Positions 3,357 to 63,093 of a stretch of 64,000 bases of DNA are shown here, piece by piece. Location of the stretch: the IMG/VR virus record IMGVR_UViG_3300042350_002797, positions 186,001 through 250,000 of that record. One strand, written 5' to 3'. The notes beneath the pieces are model-generated. The model ran no database searches, had not been told where the DNA came from, and was given only the letters and a program-made list of their open reading frames with translations. The position numbers and the translations under genes are program-made. Each line of letters starts with the position of its first letter. The stretch's first letter is position 1.

Positions 3357-3790
3357 GCTATAGGATTTCCTTTTTCATCTACTTCTAACCAAGTATAATC
3401 TCCTAACCATTTCACTCTAGCAATATATTTGTATTTGTCAGGTGATCCAGTAGTCCAGTCGTTCGGGCCCATAGGGCTTAGTCTAGTTTTATTATCTTTA
3501 CTGTCAAATATTAACCAATATATTTGATTATGGTATACTTGGAATTGATATTCTGATGCATGAACTGCATCTGTAATTTCTATTCTACGTTTTATTTGAT
3601 CTGCTTGACGTTGCATTACTCTTACTACTTCCATAATGCGTTCATATTCTTGCTGAGCATGTAGTCTTGCTACATTAAGCATTATGTCTTTTTGTTTAGT
3701 AACAGGCACTAAATCGAACTTAGGTGCCCCTACCTCCATTGGATAGGTTAAACTATTACGTCTTTCAGGATCCTTAGGATCTAATTCCAT
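3353..3790 (-). CDS. DUF2452-like protein
   Basis: YPMEVGAPKF...AQQEYERI pattern recognised from memory. Confidence 0.5.
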   Translation of the reverse strand: MELDPKDPERRNSLTYPMEVGAPKFDLVPVTKQKDIMLNVARLHAQQEYERIMEVVRVMQRQADQIKRRIEITDAVHASEYQFQVYHNQIYWLIFDSKDNKTRLSPMGPNDWTTGSPDKYKYIARVKWLGDYTWLEVDEKGNPIA

Positions 3791-4704
3791 TAGATATGCG
3801 ACAGTCTTATTAGTGTTGCTGCAAGATTAATCTCTGGATCACTGACTAGAGTATGATCTACTAAGCCTTGTTTGATAAACAAAATTGCTTTTTCTTGACG
3901 CTCATCGTCACCAAAGATTGCAACATTGTCGTACAACCATCTGAAAATTTCTTCCATCTCTTCAGGTCTAGCTTGACTACAAACAAGTTTACGTGCGTCC
4001 GATATTTTACCTTTTTTGAATAGTTCTACCATTTCAATTTTGTAATCTTGTTCTCCAGTATCTCCCTTTTCGGGAGTATGTAATGTACCAGATAAACTAT
4101 TCATTTGTACAGTATTAATACATTTACGCAAATCTGGATAAGTTGCTTTCACGAACGTATCAAGTGTATCCAACTCAAAATCAATCGCTTCGCTAACAAG
4201 AATAGTAGCAACACGAGCGGTAAACTCAGTAATATCCGTTCGCTCAACGTGAAATCCTTGACATCGTGAATGTATAGCAGGGATAATGCGATTAGGGTAG
4301 TTACAGGTGAGGATAAAACGAGAAGTCGTATGATACTCTTCCATGACACCCCTGAGAGCAGCCTGCGCATTAGGACTAAGATAATCAGCTTCATCTAATA
4401 ATACCACCTTAAAATTTCCAAAAGGAATCATTTGGACAAAATTTACAATTTTGTCTCTAACATCTTCTACACTGTTTGTACGGCTTGCATTAATTTCTAA
4501 AACATCTAAATCATTGATTTCTAATTCATTTAATAAAATTTTAGCTAATGTAGTTTTTCCAATACCTGCATTTCCGCTAAAAAGTAAATGGGGAATGCTT
4601 TCTTGTTTAACCCAACTTTCTATTTGTTCTTTTTGATGTGAATCTCGAAATACATATCCATCGAGTGTTTTAGGGCGATATTTTTCTACCCATAGCTCTT
4701 TCAT
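3790..4704 (-). CDS. Clamp loader AAA+ subunit (RFC small subunit / T4 gp44-like)
   Basis: LWVEKYRPKTL, GNAGIGKT, LEINAS, DEAD, SRC motifs. Confidence 0.93.
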   Translation of the reverse strand: MKELWVEKYRPKTLDGYVFRDSHQKEQIESWVKQESIPHLLFSGNAGIGKTTLAKILLNELEINDLDVLEINASRTNSVEDVRDKIVNFVQMIPFGNFKVVLLDEADYLSPNAQAALRGVMEEYHTTSRFILTCNYPNRIIPAIHSRCQGFHVERTDITEFTARVATILVSEAIDFELDTLDTFVKATYPDLRKCINTVQMNSLSGTLHTPEKGDTGEQDYKIEMVELFKKGKISDARKLVCSQARPEEMEEIFRWLYDNVAIFGDDERQEKAILFIKQGLVDHTLVSDPEINLAATLIRLSHI

Positions 4705-43153: not shown

Positions 43154-43375
43154 CTATAATCTGAAGGTAATTCTACCTTTGGTTAGATCGTATGGGCTAA
43201 CTTCTATTCGAACATTGTCACCCAAAATTACTTTGATTTTGTGTTGTTTAAGTTTACCGCCCATATAACAAATAAGTTCATGTGCAGTATCGTCTACTTT
43301 GACTTTAAAAGTACTATTAGGAAGAACATCGACGACTTCTCCGGTGAATTCTATCAGTTCACTGTTTTTAGCCAT
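43154..43375 (-). CDS. infA: Translation initiation factor IF-1
   Basis: IEFTGEVVDVLPN..F.V, GK.....IKVILGD.V.IEVSPYDLTKGRITFR; start MAK at 43375. Confidence 0.93.
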   Translation of the reverse strand: MAKNSELIEFTGEVVDVLPNSTFKVKVDDTAHELICYMGGKLKQHKIKVILGDNVRIEVSPYDLTKGRITFRL

Positions 43376-43538
43376 TTTTTGATATAACAATCGAATTGTC
43401 TTGAACTTTAATAGTCAATTGATCGCCTTCCTTCCAACCGTTTAAGTCTAAAATTTCTTGTGGTATTTTCATAAGTATGTTATCTGGATCCCCTTCAATT
43501 TCTTCGAATATTTCTTCTGATTTAAAAATAAGTTTCAT
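43368..43538 (-). CDS. AbrB/MazE/SpoVT-like DNA-binding protein (56 aa)
   Basis: Not in track. MKLIFKSEEIFEEIEGDPDNILMKIPQEILDLNGWKEGDQLTIKVQDNSIVISKNG*. Confidence 0.7.
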   Translation of the reverse strand: MKLIFKSEEIFEEIEGDPDNILMKIPQEILDLNGWKEGDQLTIKVQDNSIVISKNG

Positions 43539-43595
43539 TTTGATATAAAGTCTTTCTGTGAAGTATAAGTATAATTATATTTTTTGTCAATTAAA

Positions 43596-55339: not shown

Positions 55340-56085
55340 TGTTTAATCAATCTAATAATGTAAGCAGGTATATCAAACTCCCACCAACGTTCTTGATTGT
55401 TCCAAGCATATGGTTTAGCGTGATGTGTATTATGCCACCCTTCTCCTAATGTGATAAGATTGGCAATCCAACTATTACGGCTTTGATCTTTGACGTCCGG
55501 ATAAGGTCTATAACCATGTCTATGTGCTATAACAATAATAGCACTAGTGCTGTGTAAGCAAAGACAAGCAGGTATAGCAAACACATATATTATCATTAAT
55601 GGATCATAAGCAAATAAAATTGATATCCAAATTAGAATTACCAGCAAATATTTTTTGTGTAGTTCTCGTTGAAAGACATTTTCACGCATATCACGAACTA
55701 GTTTTAAATCTAATCTAGGCATATTCCATATACCGAACCATGCTCGAAAATTTCCCAGTATATAAGGACTATGAGGATCTCCAGGACGTTCTGCTGATCT
55801 ATGATGCTGTCTATGTACAGCTACCCAAGCTAATGGACTACCTACCACAGTAATAACACCTATAAGACTAAACAGTTGCTCCCAGAATCGATGTGTTTTA
55901 AAACTACGATGACTGAGTAGTCTATGGTAACCAATGTTAATACCAAGTACACCTATGATCCAATAGGTTACTAAGGACACAAATAATAAACTATATTCAG
56001 CAATGTAGATAGCATATATTATACCTATTGTAGCAATTACATGATTAATTACTTGTAGTGTTCTTACAGTTTGATTATGTGTCAT
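55336..56085 (-). CDS. Membrane fatty acid desaturase
   Basis: GYHRLLSH, HRQHH, GDPHSP, GEGWHNTHH, WWEFD. Confidence 0.92.
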   Translation of the reverse strand: MTHNQTVRTLQVINHVIATIGIIYAIYIAEYSLLFVSLVTYWIIGVLGINIGYHRLLSHRSFKTHRFWEQLFSLIGVITVVGSPLAWVAVHRQHHRSAERPGDPHSPYILGNFRAWFGIWNMPRLDLKLVRDMRENVFQRELHKKYLLVILIWISILFAYDPLMIIYVFAIPACLCLHSTSAIIVIAHRHGYRPYPDVKDQSRNSWIANLITLGEGWHNTHHAKPYAWNNQERWWEFDIPAYIIRLIKQ

Positions 56086-56644
56086 TTTTATCATCTACAA
56101 CTAGCCATCCTAATTTAAGTAAGTCATCTCGAATTTCTTCAGTGACAACGCCTTCAGACACAAACTTAGTACGAGCAGCCCATTCGCAGAAAGTCTCTTC
56201 ATCTTTATCCCAACTGCCTGCAAGCCCTCCCATGCCACTACAGTACCAGTCAATGTAGTCACCTTCTTGACGCATGTCAGCAATGATGCCTCCAGCATAG
56301 CGCCAACTAGCACTCCATGTCTCTTCTTTTAATACTGGCCACAAATCACGTTTTTGAAATTCATTATTACACATTGCTGCATATAAATTTTGAGCGTAAT
56401 GTTCTTTATTGCGAACTTTTTCCAAAATCCAATCGCAAGTACGCAGATCATATTCTAAGTTATTTTTTTGCCACTCAGGATTTGTTTCATTTTCCTCGGC
56501 TCGAATTCCCCAGCTATTATAAAACTCTAGCATAGTCTTGACATGTTCATCATTTTCAGGAGTGCGACCTTTTTCAGCCCATCTTTCAAGGGACTTAGAT
56601 TTTTGAAAACTATAACGATCAGGACTTTTACTTGGCTTGTTCAT
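56075..56644 (-). CDS. Hypothetical phage protein
   Basis: NLEYDLR, YAQNLYAAMCNN, SWRYAGGIIA, DYIDWYCSG. Confidence 0.65.
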   Translation of the reverse strand: MNKPSKSPDRYSFQKSKSLERWAEKGRTPENDEHVKTMLEFYNSWGIRAEENETNPEWQKNNLEYDLRTCDWILEKVRNKEHYAQNLYAAMCNNEFQKRDLWPVLKEETWSASWRYAGGIIADMRQEGDYIDWYCSGMGGLAGSWDKDEETFCEWAARTKFVSEGVVTEEIRDDLLKLGWLVVDDKNDT

Positions 56645-56911: not shown

Positions 56912-56936
56912 AAAAATAGGCACCGAAGTGCCTATT
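56910..56936 (-). terminator. Intrinsic terminator
   Basis: AATAGGCAC-TTCG-GTGCCTATT followed by a T run. Confidence 0.85.
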
Positions 56937-57534
56937 ACATAGTTGGACCGTTGCCGTTTTTAAAACCAACTGTGCCACCTTCTGCTTCGATACGTTTGAT
57001 TACGTCTTCGAATAATATAGGCGTGTAGTCAGTTTGTTCTACACAAACGCAATGATAACGAGGATCGATTTCGTCACTGTACAGAACTTCACCTGTTTTA
57101 GCATTTATGCCACGTGCTTTTTTAACACGACCTGCATGTAAGTGTCCGTGTATGTTTACACCAAAACGTCCTAAACTTGCTTCGTGTACAGGAATATGAC
57201 TCAGTATCATTCCATTCATAACGTGGTAAGCACGAAGTTCTCGAAAATATTCGTTATATTCTGTATCACGAAAGATGTCGTGATTGCCTCGGATTAACAC
57301 TTTATCTCCGTTTAATCGAGACAATGTAGATAACGCTTTACGGTTAATAACCACATCACCTAAATGATAAACTTTATCGTTTGGGCGAACACGGTCGTTC
57401 CAACGGCGGATCATTTCTTCGTCCATTTCGCTAGGATCGTCCCAAGGACGAAGTTTAGTTCCGTCGTCGCGTAAGAATCGGCACACACCAGCATGACCAA
57501 AGTGCGTGTCGCTAACTAAAAATACTGCTGGCAT
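56935..57534 (-). CDS. Calcineurin-like metallophosphoesterase
   Basis: SDTHFGH, YHLGDV, RGNHD, LSHIP, HGHLH. Confidence 0.9.
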   Translation of the reverse strand: MPAVFLVSDTHFGHAGVCRFLRDDGTKLRPWDDPSEMDEEMIRRWNDRVRPNDKVYHLGDVVINRKALSTLSRLNGDKVLIRGNHDIFRDTEYNEYFRELRAYHVMNGMILSHIPVHEASLGRFGVNIHGHLHAGRVKKARGINAKTGEVLYSDEIDPRYHCVCVEQTDYTPILFEDVIKRIEAEGGTVGFKNGNGPTM

Positions 57535-57594: not shown

Positions 57595-58200
57595 CTATAC
57601 TGCTAGGTATTCTACGTCTGCTGCCAAAATAAATCTAAATTTGTTGCTCTGAACTATTCCAGGTCTGTGCCAATAATCACTAGGGTATACTAACCAACTA
57701 AATTTTTCTGGTTTAACATAAAATTTTCCAGAGTTTTCTGGACCGTTAGGTGCAAACTCTGTGCCACAATAATTTAGATCAGTTACATCGTCAGGAATAT
57801 CTAAATACCAAATTCCGCTTAATAATTTACTTTTTTCAGTGCTAGGATGCCAATGATGATGCCAAAGATTGTTTCTATCTTCTGCACCTTCTAAGTTAGT
57901 CATGAAACTCCAAGCCTGCATATTAAAAACTTTGACTTCTCTTCCTAGATACATGAATACACTGAAAAGAAAACTCATTCTGTATTTTAACCAAACTTCT
58001 TCTGTTCGATTAAAAATATTTTCTTTAGTTTGATATTTTGGGCTGTTAGTATAGTAGTTGCCGTTATCAATAATTTGTTTTACAATATTGCAAGCATTAT
58101 CGTTATCTTGTTTGTTAATGACAGAACTGAAGTCGAACTTTTTAAAGATTTGATTGCTATCTATTACAGTAGAATTTTTAGGTAGGATAATATTATTCAT
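57595..58200 (-). CDS. Putative 2OG-Fe(II) oxygenase
   Basis: AWSF, WHHH, LSGIWYL, GTEF, YPS.YWH.P, RFILAAD. Confidence 0.65.
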   Translation of the reverse strand: MNNIILPKNSTVIDSNQIFKKFDFSSVINKQDNDNACNIVKQIIDNGNYYTNSPKYQTKENIFNRTEEVWLKYRMSFLFSVFMYLGREVKVFNMQAWSFMTNLEGAEDRNNLWHHHWHPSTEKSKLLSGIWYLDIPDDVTDLNYCGTEFAPNGPENSGKFYVKPEKFSWLVYPSDYWHRPGIVQSNKFRFILAADVEYLAV

Positions 58201-59535: not shown

Positions 59536-59742
59536 TTACTTCTGATATTTCTGATTCATTTCGTCTATAGTTTGATCCCACTTTAATTGTGCTAAAGCTA
59601 ATGTATATACAAGATAACCAGCAAATGAAAGTGCCAACACTGCTACTGCCCAATTAGGCAAATAACTCATTACAAAACCGGTAACAAAACCAGTTAACAT
59701 TACTCCCGCAGTTATTAGAGCTGCTTTAAGTTTTATGTTCAT
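59536..59742 (-). CDS. Small membrane protein
   Basis: Two hydrophobic segments; RBS AAGGA. Confidence 0.55.
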   Translation of the reverse strand: MNIKLKAALITAGVMLTGFVTGFVMSYLPNWAVAVLALSFAGYLVYTLALAQLKWDQTIDEMNQKYQK

Positions 59743-59828: not shown

Positions 59829-59927
59829 TGGTGTGGTCGGTAGGCTTCGAACCTACAAGAGCTTGGCTTTGCCTGTGCCCATCCCCGACCCAACGAGTGG
59901 GAGCTTTTCCAGTTTGCTTACGACCAC
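59829..59927 (-). ncRNA. tRNA-like RNA with non-canonical anticodon arm
   Basis: Acceptor GTGGTCG/CGACCAC-ACCA, D-arm and T-arm GTAGG-TTCGAAG-CCTAC are present, but there is no 5-bp/7-nt anticodon arm. Confidence 0.75.
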
Positions 59928-59932
59928 AGCTA

Positions 59933-59961
59933 ATTATATAGTCGTAAATGGTAACTGTCAA
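59933..59961 (-). promoter_or_regulatory. Consensus sigma70 promoter for the tRNA-like RNA
   Basis: TTGACA-17-TATAAT; predicted start site at about the RNA 5' end. Confidence 0.85.
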
Positions 59962-61760: not shown

Positions 61761-62588
61761 TTAATCTGTATAAATTTTCGAATAATCGAAAGCTATTCGA
61801 TGTAAAACTCTATTGGCCATATCTTCAAATGGCCAACGTTTATGAATACTTAACCATTGTTCAGAAATTACAATGTCTCCGTCTTCCCAATCATGATGAT
61901 AAACATATTTTTCTTGTAAGATATGATCAGTTAAAAGATTCATAATTTCTTTAAACTCTTTTTCTTCGTAGTTTTCAAATCCGAAAATTTGTAGAAAAGG
62001 AAAAAATAAACCTTTGTTTCCTTCTTTATTAATTTGTACTAAATTAACCGGATTATCTTTATCTATATGTTCTATAAAAAATCTACTATTGGAATATGAA
62101 CCTACTTTGTATCCACAGTATACTTTGATATTGTTAATTTTTTCTTTTATGTCGCTAGGCAAATCTTCATAAGAACGGATGTTGTTTATCCAACTAGTTC
62201 TTGAACCTTTTGTTCCTTCTACACCATACAACCAAATTAATGGAGATCGTTGCTTGTTGCTAGGTTGATTTGCATGCCAATCTAAAGCAGCTTTATGACC
62301 AAATAATCCTTCCTCACCATACTCGTTCTTTTTTCCGGTAACACGTAGTATACCATCATTTACTCTGATGTGTTTAATTCTTTCTACGTCTGGAGGATAA
62401 TATTGATATTTTCCTATTTTAGAACAAAAATTTAACTCTTGTTCAGGAGTAAGTTTTTGATTTTTAAAAACAACAACCATGTTTTTTACAACTAACTTAC
62501 CTATTTCTATAATTTCTTGATCGGACAGATCATTTAAATTTTCATTTATAAAAACGGTCCACCCGTTGTCTGCATAACTTATATTCAT
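61761..62588 (-). CDS. TauD/TfdA family dioxygenase
   Basis: VVVFKNQKLTPE, DWHAN, WLY...GS.T.W, H.WEDGDIVI......HKR, RVLHR. Confidence 0.85.
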   Translation of the reverse strand: MNISYADNGWTVFINENLNDLSDQEIIEIGKLVVKNMVVVFKNQKLTPEQELNFCSKIGKYQYYPPDVERIKHIRVNDGILRVTGKKNEYGEEGLFGHKAALDWHANQPSNKQRSPLIWLYGVEGTKGSRTSWINNIRSYEDLPSDIKEKINNIKVYCGYKVGSYSNSRFFIEHIDKDNPVNLVQINKEGNKGLFFPFLQIFGFENYEEKEFKEIMNLLTDHILQEKYVYHHDWEDGDIVISEQWLSIHKRWPFEDMANRVLHRIAFDYSKIYTD

Positions 62589-63001: not shown

Positions 63002-63093
63002 TGGTACCAGCGGTAGGAATCGAACCTACTCAAGAACGCTAATCTGGCGCTAAAAGGTGTATAAGACCTCTCTGACTTCCAAGTCTCGCTGGC
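63002..63093 (-). tRNA. tRNA-Ile(TAT), atypical
   Basis: GAGGT-CT TAT AC-ACCTT; 4-nt D-loop; long variable region; ends ACCA. Confidence 0.75.

Follow-up and report, generated by a model that had tools for sequence, protein, structure and literature searches.

An anticodon-less tRNA mimic conserved in uncultured aquatic jumbo phages

We describe a 99-nt phage RNA that retains every part of a leucine-type tRNA except the loop that reads codons, and that lies behind its own predicted promoter and belongs to a large, conserved and apparently undescribed family of over 100 distinct RNAs (95–119 nt) found on more than 150 contigs of uncultured aquatic jumbo phages. In every member the anticodon stem continues into a closed extension of variable length, whereas the 7-bp acceptor stem, the D and T arms and a long variable arm are maintained, implying a functional, non-decoding tRNA look-alike rather than a decayed gene. 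The family is not represented in Rfam 15, and literature searches, albeit in an incomplete collection of full texts, found no description of it.

The RNA was identified in a 64,000-nt stretch of DNA (hereafter the window), comprising bases 186001–250000 of a 364,554-bp IMG/VR virus record rated complete, with 36% G+C. The record carries T4-type replication genes such as a clamp loader, and the DNA runs that hold the locus are lake and other freshwater metagenomes. We found no close cultured relatives: DNA ligase is at most 35% identical and the clamp loader at most 56%, the latter to Pseudomonas jumbo phage PA5oct. ARAGORN finds 28 tRNA genes in the genome, most of them in a minus-strand cluster at window 58.2–64 kb and beyond, and the RNA lies inside that cluster. 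The tRNA set is otherwise odd, with an allo-tRNA-like UAU species and a CUA suppressor type.

Reading the minus strand confirmed the observation in the preliminary description, which had reported a tRNA-like RNA with intact acceptor, D and T arms, an encoded ACCA, a consensus promoter, a bulged variable arm and a hairpin with a 3-nt loop in place of the anticodon arm; all of these facts hold. The positions of the features are given in the table below. Position 8 is U, and the two hairpins between the D and T arms were obtained from the minimum free energy (MFE) fold. The single-sequence fold energy is not exceptional (z = −1.4), so that the case for a real structure rests on homologs rather than on energy. 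The promoter is one of only two such sites in 6.5 kb.

Features of the RNA locus and of neighbouring genes; positions refer to the window, and R2 is the covariance model of the whole family
Feature	Position (strand)	RNA nt	Observations
Predicted sigma-70 promoter	59933–59961 (−)		12/12 match, 17-nt spacer
−35 hexamer TTGACA	59956–59961 (−)		TTGAC(A/C/T) kept in most of 117 homologous loci while the spacer varies
−10 hexamer TATAAT	59933–59938 (−)		Ends 5 nt before G1
tRNA-like RNA (TLR)	59829–59927 (−)	1–99	73 bits, E = 4e-17 with R2
Acceptor stem, 5' strand	59921–59927 (−)	1–7	Pairs 7/7 with 59833–59839; compensatory changes in the family at pairs 1:72, 2:71, 3:70, 4:69, 5:68 and 6:67
D arm	59902–59918 (−)	10–26	3-bp stem, 11-nt loop with G18 G19; same D arm in a class-II tRNA(UAA) of another phage, and close to the D arm of T4 tRNA-Leu
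Hairpin 1, replacing the anticodon arm	59884–59901 (−)	27–44	7 bp, one bulged C, GUU triloop; invariant in 24 contigs although no search pattern forced it
Hairpin 2, long variable arm	59859–59880 (−)	48–69	4 bp, internal loop, 3 bp, AAA loop
T arm	59840–59856 (−)	72–88	5 bp and UUCGAAG loop; pair 50:64 switches between U-A and C-G in the family
Acceptor 3' strand, discriminator A and encoded CCA	59829–59839 (−)	89–99	
Next gene on the same strand (68 aa, predicted membrane protein)	59536–59742 (−)		86 nt after CCA, with no terminator between
tRNA-Pro(UGG), normal	58208–58286		
Gene for unknown 180-aa protein	56084–56644 (same strand, downstream)		
IF-1 homolog	43157–43375 (same strand, downstream)		

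Assignment of the RNA to existing tRNA classes was examined next. ARAGORN labels it tRNA-Pro(UGG), but this is a forced fit that requires two unpaired bases after the D stem and an anticodon stem with only 3 of 5 pairs. The Rfam tRNA model (RF00005, threshold 29 bits) detects 15 neighbouring tRNAs but not this RNA, gives no tRNA hit even at E up to 10, and gives no hit in 10 homologous loci, in which Rfam reports nothing at all. The only tRNA-clan match in a permissive scan is tRNA-Sec (RF01852) at 15.1 bits and E = 3, against a threshold of 47 bits, and the RNA has a 7/5 acceptor/T branch and no UCA loop, in contrast to the 8/5 branch and UCA anticodon of tRNA-Sec. The 7/5 branch, which holds throughout the family, and the absence of an anticodon loop also exclude an allo-tRNA, defined by an 8/4 or 9/3 branch with an anticodon loop (PMC5389517). 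Of the canonical tRNA hallmarks, the acceptor stem, the D arm with G18 G19, the T arm with UUCRA, the discriminator and CCA are present, whereas a 5-bp anticodon stem closing a 7-nt loop with U33 and a purine at 37 is absent. Of the class-II tRNA-Leu hallmarks, A73, the long variable arm and a Leu-type D loop are present, but there is no leucine anticodon. An ARAGORN tmRNA search of the genome was negative, and a 99-nt RNA has no room for an internal tag reading frame.

Three IMG/VR contigs and 20 metagenome contigs carry the same RNA. In two homologous loci, designated L003 and L004, the surrounding DNA is about 80% and about 88% identical to the window, respectively, and the canonical tRNAs of the cluster range from 54/75 to 89/92 identical positions, whereas the RNA is identical at 98/99 and 99/99 positions, making it the best-conserved element of the tRNA cluster. 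In the 24 copies, nucleotides 1–50 never change, although only nt 10–26 were fixed by the search pattern, and all differences fall in the variable-arm loops or the T loop or are A-to-G changes that turn a U-A pair into a U.G pair. One window-type copy (L013) lacks the CCA. Upstream, the two promoter hexamers are constant and the spacer is free to vary.

To define the family, a covariance model of the window type (R1) was run on whole records of relatives found through the clamp loader, which yielded RNAs of 96–116 nt in four contigs, among them a 345-kb near-complete genome (G001); ARAGORN finds no tRNA in any of these four distant members. A scan with the shared 3' half then returned at least 119 viral contigs holding 82 distinct RNAs, and a second scan, anchored on the D arm and leaving the 3' half free, added 24 further distinct variants, so that model and pattern searches together gave 82 plus 24 distinct RNAs on more than 140 viral contigs. 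R2 scores the family members at 73–110 bits and finds no member above 50 bits in five cultured jumbo or T4-like phages, PA5oct, Atu_ph07, RsoM2USA, Phosso and phiWae14. To test for a host-derived sequence or att site, 185,579 species genomes were scanned with two exact patterns: the D-arm-to-T-loop pattern gave nothing, and a 19-mer of hairpin 1 gave three hits, about the number expected by chance, all inside unrelated, apparently protein-coding, non-tRNA sequence.

Comparison of the family members reveals a common anatomy. The acceptor stem always has 7 pairs and position 8 is U, while the D arm has either a loop of the kind found in the phages' own tRNA-Leu genes or the window's A-rich form, which resembles that of T4 tRNA-Leu. 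A 5-bp stem, often CCUCC with GGAGG, stands where the anticodon stem should be, but instead of closing a 7-nt loop it runs on into a further helix of very different length and sequence. The terminal loops are mostly UUCG, GNRA (seven kinds), or CUUG and UUUG tetraloops, and some are C-rich hexaloops or a recurrent GUAAC-type loop. Fifteen distinct members carry AGUA opposite GAAC, which by sequence is the loop-E or sarcin-ricin type of internal loop. The window's short arm aligns with the 5' half and the last bases of the longer GGGA-capped arm of two homologs (L155 and L166), so it looks like a deletion form that re-paired. The second hairpin has a constant architecture (outer stem, 2–3 nt bulge, inner stem and triloop, mostly UUA) but 16 different inner-helix sequences.

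Covariation supports these helices. On 80 aligned sequences, 95.5% of cells are paired, compared to 86.5% in shuffles and 27–52% with slid partners, and 156 cells carry changes on both sides; pairs 3:70, 5:68, 6:67 and 50:64 switch between Watson-Crick types. RNAalifold independently recovers the acceptor, T and outer variable-arm stems, the last with GC, CG and UA at one pair. Because the 3' pattern used for the first viral set fixed the T loop, most of the T stem, positions 71–73 and CCA, their constancy in that set is partly by construction, a bias that the D-arm-anchored set removes. In the latter, the acceptor stem is 7/7 paired in all 24 members, with pair 1:72 being G.U, G-C or A-U, pair 2:71 U-A, C-G or U.G, and pair 4:69 G-C or A-U, while the discriminator is A in 24/24 and CCA follows in 23/24. 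The acceptor stem is therefore structural, and A73-CCA is sequence-constrained.

The promoter geometry is conserved as well. In 117 loci, representing 85 distinct upstream sequences, the best promoter match scores 9–12 of 12 in 112, the spacer is 17 nt in 105, and the −10 box ends exactly 6 nt before nucleotide 1 in 106; in the independent set the same distance is found in 22/24, and nucleotide 1 is always a purine. Considering the usual geometry of sigma-70 promoters, this places the inferred transcription start at the mature 5' end. Downstream, no terminator-like site was found within 110 nt in 92 distinct contexts, and an ATG-led ORF of at least 45 codons begins within 50 nt of CCA in 83 of them. 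Expression itself is inferred from sequence, as four metatranscriptomes hold the region only at a depth of 2–7, on contigs that run past the RNA, such that DNA carry-over is not excluded.

To trace the ancestry, we ranked canonical tRNAs by their R2 scores. tRNA-Leu ranks first in 7 of 8 phage genomes, namely T4, the window's genome, G001, RsoM2USA, phiWae14, Phosso and Atu_ph07, and tRNA-Ser ranks first in PA5oct. In phiWae14, which also has a tRNA-Tyr with the same T arm, Leu scores 41.8 bits and Tyr 34.4 bits. The likeness to Leu is relative, as in three arbitrary bacterial genomes the top hits were Tyr, Lys/Ser/Gly and Arg/Trp tRNAs, indicating that the signal is specific to phage tRNA-Leu and is not universal. 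A tRNA-Tyr ancestry was considered because both near-complete genomes lack tRNA-Tyr and the T arm equals that of an Aeromonas phage tRNA-Tyr; in that phage, however, tRNA-Leu scores higher than tRNA-Tyr, leaving this as a minority possibility.

The neighbouring genes offer few clues to a partner. In 86 of 118 loci a radical-SAM gene starts about 63 nt upstream on the other strand, diverging from the promoter, and is followed by an unknown 198-aa protein and a radical-SAM/SPASM gene. In the window's genome the radical-SAM genes lie 100 kb away and have no second copy of the RNA beside them, so the linkage is not obligatory. The downstream genes differ between lineages and encode an Hc1-like protein, a secreted 108-aa protein, an unknown 180-aa protein, a kinase or the 68-aa membrane protein, with a MazE-like protein and an IF-1 homolog further on; of these, the 180-aa and IF-1 genes are still downstream on the same strand in the window's genome. 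No neighbour is a recognisable tRNA-binding enzyme. Family searches of the window's genome found no class-Ia aaRS (PF00133), CCA enzyme, TROVE/Ro60 (PF05731), DUF2828, RtcB, Rnl1 or Rnl2 gene, although the Rnl1 negative is weak because its control matched no genome.

Taken together, the data establish a maintained, tRNA-Leu-derived RNA that keeps a 7-bp acceptor stem, A73, CCA, a canonical D/T elbow and a long variable arm and whose anticodon loop is replaced by a closed helix, and we hold with high confidence that it is a tRNA-shaped RNA that does not decode. As inferred from the promoter geometry, host sigma-70 RNA polymerase would start at nucleotide 1, so that the RNA would carry a 5' triphosphate and need no RNase P step, and as the first element of a longer early-type transcript it would have to be cut from the downstream message at its 3' side; the mechanism is likewise inferred. 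In the view that we favour, though only tentatively, the RNA offers the acceptor end, elbow and variable-arm face of tRNA-Leu to a protein that reads the tRNA body rather than the anticodon, while being itself shut out of the ribosomal decoding site. It would then act as a competitive ligand, either a decoy or an uncleavable substrate analogue, for a host enzyme that senses, charges, modifies or attacks class-II tRNA, with LeuRS or a tRNA-targeting defence nuclease or transferase as candidates. This view is favoured by the sealed and often hyper-stable arm, the strong promoter that would make processing unnecessary and the very high conservation within lineages. However, no partner protein is identified, any partner must come from the unknown host given the families absent from the phage genome, and a decoy for a catalytic enzyme must be abundant or bind tightly, neither of which is shown. 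A more far-reaching version, which we regard as doubtful, is that the family represents a new class of counter-defence or host-takeover RNA, a high-copy, RNase-P-independent tRNA-Leu body with a sealed anticodon loop that could bind and jam an enzyme recognising class-II tRNA by shape, such as an anticodon nuclease, a 3'-end-modifying toxin or LeuRS itself, without being cleaved or used; the hypervariable capped arm would then record an arms race with that enzyme.

The interpretation in the preliminary description is partly supported. Its central claim of a maintained tRNA mimic without a decodable anticodon is strongly supported: the two outcomes it had named in advance as fatal, a fold into a canonical tRNA or random decay of the arm among homologs, were not observed, since homologs keep the tRNA body, the promoter and a closed arm through compensatory changes. 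The functions it listed, i.e. a decoy for anticodon nucleases, synthetases, RelA or Ro60-type proteins, or an aminoacyl donor for non-ribosomal chemistry, were guesses that sequence cannot separate. The decoy and donor roles are not excluded, but a RelA role is unlikely by inference, since RelA sensing is thought to need an anticodon at the A site, and the Ro60 option is not supported. The resemblance to the stable T4 RNAs is an analogy of place and mystery only.

Among the alternatives, the next in rank, although we consider it unlikely, is an aminoacyl carrier that is charged, most plausibly with leucine by host LeuRS, and hands the amino acid to a non-ribosomal acceptor such as an L/F-transferase, a Fem-type or PEARL-type transferase, or a cyclodipeptide synthase; removal of the anticodon would keep this pool out of translation. 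Bacterial LeuRS reads A73 and the core fold and ignores the anticodon, which makes leucylation plausible. The conservation of A73 and CCA where unconstrained, the Leu-type D loop and the Leu likeness favour this reading, and the adjacent radical-SAM genes could be a modification pathway. On the other hand, no aminoacyl-transferase fold was recognised among the neighbours, the radical-SAM linkage is not obligatory, and a simple donor has no need for a long, tetraloop-capped arm. Somewhat less likely still is a cis-acting 5' module, a natural tRNA scaffold at the very 5' end of an early polycistronic transcript that serves as a processing and stability signal, defining the 5' end of the downstream message or protecting it, with any free RNA being a by-product. 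This would fit the predicted start at nucleotide 1, the lack of a terminator, the proximity of the downstream ORF and the organization in G001, where the RNA heads a tight same-strand block that includes the MazE-like gene and the IF-1 homolog. However, the downstream gene differs between lineages, the RNA is more conserved than any neighbour, an encoded CCA and an invariant A73 are not needed for a cleavage signal, and in the window a second promoter-like site lies between the RNA and the next ORF.

The remaining readings are poorly supported or excluded. A role as RNA partner of a Ro60-like (TROVE/DUF2828-vWA) RNA-repair particle, by analogy with Y RNAs, is very unlikely: one family member lies between a DUF2828+DUF7788 protein and an AAA_33 kinase, and jumbo phages with ROT/TROVE proteins and tRNA-like partners are discussed in PMC7824862, but that neighbourhood is seen once among 118 loci, the window's genome has no TROVE or DUF2828 homolog, and the RNA ends form an acceptor stem rather than the terminal Ro-binding helix. 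An unusual but decoding tRNA, either tRNA-Pro(UGG) or one with an expanded loop for non-triplet reading, is close to refuted despite the ARAGORN call and the odd tRNA set of the phage, as the 'UGG' aligns with tetraloop and stem residues of longer homologs, the homologs have tetraloop caps and no 7-nt loop, and a normal tRNA-Pro(UGG) is already present. A decaying tRNA-Leu pseudogene, suggested by the missing anticodon and the deletion-like form of the arm, is refuted by the conservation of the RNA and its promoter hexamers, by the compensatory changes across more than 100 variants and by an arm that is rebuilt with stable caps rather than eroded.

tRNA look-alikes that do not decode are few (tmRNA, Y RNAs, mascRNA, T4 RNA C/D), and most phage examples have remained unexplained for decades. 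The present family offers more than 100 natural variants, a clear ancestry in tRNA-Leu and a simple design rule, which is to keep the body, seal the anticodon and start transcription, as inferred, at nucleotide 1; its promoter should work in E. coli, which makes the question of why phages carry tRNA-shaped RNAs that are not tRNAs directly testable, and the natural variation already shows which parts matter. If the partner is a defence enzyme or a synthetase, this would be a new RNA-based way for phages to handle the host tRNA machinery, and if the RNA is charged, it would be a dedicated non-ribosomal aminoacyl carrier in a virus. The family also matters for annotation, because tRNA finders either miss these genes or mislabel them, as with tRNA-Pro here.

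The closest known molecule is the canonical class-II tRNA-Leu of T4-like and jumbo phages, which shares the 7/5 acceptor/T architecture, A73, CCA, the Leu-type D loop and a long variable arm, whereas the TLR has no 7-nt anticodon loop and no anticodon, an extended and capped arm, a longer and bulged variable arm, and its own promoter with an inferred start at nucleotide 1 instead of RNase P processing. T4 RNA C and RNA D (species 1 and 2 stable RNAs) are also small stable phage RNAs encoded at a tRNA cluster, with function still unknown (PMC3014915, PMC9697503), and RNA C has a tRNA-type T arm, but there is no detectable homology: R1 and R2 give RNA C 11.5 and 17.1 bits over its T-arm region and RNA D no hit, compared to 36.8 and 35.2 bits for T4 tRNA-Leu. 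RNA C and RNA D are longer (139 and 119 nt), reported as late RNAs in T4, and not transcribed from a promoter abutting nucleotide 1. The bacterial Y RNA YrlA, which acts with Ro60/Rsr, is a non-coding RNA that mimics the tRNA elbow and acceptor region and does not decode; in YrlA, however, the RNA ends form the Ro-binding helix and the tRNA-like part is internal, whereas here the ends form the acceptor stem with CCA and no Ro-like gene is present in the genome. The tRNA-like domain of tmRNA has an acceptor stem, T arm and CCA without an anticodon arm and is chargeable yet not codon-reading, but tmRNA carries a message part and a G3:U70 alanine identity, while the TLR has no ORF, mostly G3-C70 or A3-U70, a full D arm and a variable arm. 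Bacillus cereus tRNA-Other, staphylococcal cell-wall tRNA-Gly and allo-tRNA-like RNAs (for the last, PMC5389517) are tRNA-derived molecules proposed to act outside normal decoding, but those keep an anticodon loop and are cellular, whereas the TLR removes the loop altogether and is viral. Finally, engineered tRNA scaffold RNAs follow the same design, with an insert grafted on the anticodon stem of an intact tRNA body; the scaffold is a laboratory construct, whereas here the design is natural and conserved, and the insert varies between lineages.

Fifteen distinct members of the tRNA-like RNA family have AGUA facing GAAC in the extended arm, the sequence signature of a loop-E or sarcin-ricin-type motif, whereas other members have ACCCCC or GUAAC-type terminal loops; these elements may be lineage-specific binding sites. 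Exactly the D arm of the window RNA is found in a class-II tRNA(UAA), without encoded CCA, on L024, another metagenomic phage contig, making this tRNA a possible living relative of the ancestor.

Considering the gene neighborhood, a conserved trio, comprising a radical SAM gene, an unknown 198-aa protein with a methyltransferase-like look and a radical SAM/SPASM gene, diverges from the RNA's promoter in 86 of 118 loci but lies 100 kb away in the window's genome (G000). In one lineage, represented by contig L111, the RNA is flanked by a DUF2828+DUF7788 (Ro-like vWA) protein and an AAA_33 kinase, a setting that looks like RNA repair. A phage-encoded homolog of translation initiation factor IF-1 (PF01176, 68 bits) lies in the window beside a MazE/AbrB-like 57-aa protein, and in the near-complete genome of the relative G001 both lie in the same-strand gene block that the tRNA-like RNA heads. 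Interspersed with the tRNA genes of the window are a metallophosphoesterase, a weak sub-threshold match to a 2OG-Fe(II) oxygenase (PHROG E 7e-6; Pfam 20 bits, below its 27-bit cut-off) and a TauD-type dioxygenase, for which a role in tRNA or nucleotide modification is possible, although this is a suggestion from sequence alone.

Coordinates of additional features in the window, in the genomes G000 and G001 and on related contigs
Feature	Sequence	Position	Strand
Class-II tRNA called Ile(UAU)	Window	63002-63093	-
Class-II tRNA called Ile(UAU)	L003 (IMG/VR contig carrying the window-type RNA)	3715-3807
Class-II tRNA called Ile(UAU)	G001	273786-273877
tRNA with CUA anticodon	G000 genome, outside the window	350196-350271	+
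IF-1 homolog and MazE/AbrB-like protein	Window	43157-43375 and 43371-43541	-
Metallophosphoesterase, weak 2OG-Fe(II) oxygenase match and TauD-type dioxygenase	Window	56935-57534, 57595-58200 and 61761-62588	- (all)
Family member, example for the arm motifs	L120	3031-3141
Family member, example for the arm motifs	L130	7307-7424
Family member, example for the arm motifs	L133	4390-4507
Radical SAM, 198-aa protein, radical SAM/SPASM trio	L201, L233 and L158 (contigs of family loci)	L201:2608-3585, L233:4735-5328 and L158:2530-3519	-, + and -
Radical SAM, 198-aa protein, radical SAM/SPASM trio	G000 genome	134550-144320
DUF2828+DUF7788 protein and AAA_33 kinase	L111	1688-3097 and 1008-1547	- (both)
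Permuted tmRNA	G001	283032-283475	-
Class-II tRNA(UAA)	L024	8587-8673	+

The two near-complete genomes, G000 and G001, carry 28-29 tRNAs covering every amino acid except tyrosine. G000 carries a tRNA with a CUA anticodon, which is of the amber-suppressor type and is labeled Pyl by ARAGORN. In G001, ARAGORN reports a permuted tmRNA with a 27-residue tag, whereas no tmRNA is called in G000. The window, L003 and G001 also encode a 92-nt class-II tRNA, called Ile(UAU) by ARAGORN and missed by Rfam's tRNA model at the gathering threshold, with a 4-nt D loop on a 4-bp stem, a 6-bp anticodon stem, a long variable arm and A73. This tRNA might read AUA with an amino acid other than Ile, and it resembles the allo-tRNA(UAU) kind reported by Mukai et al. 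(PMC5389517).
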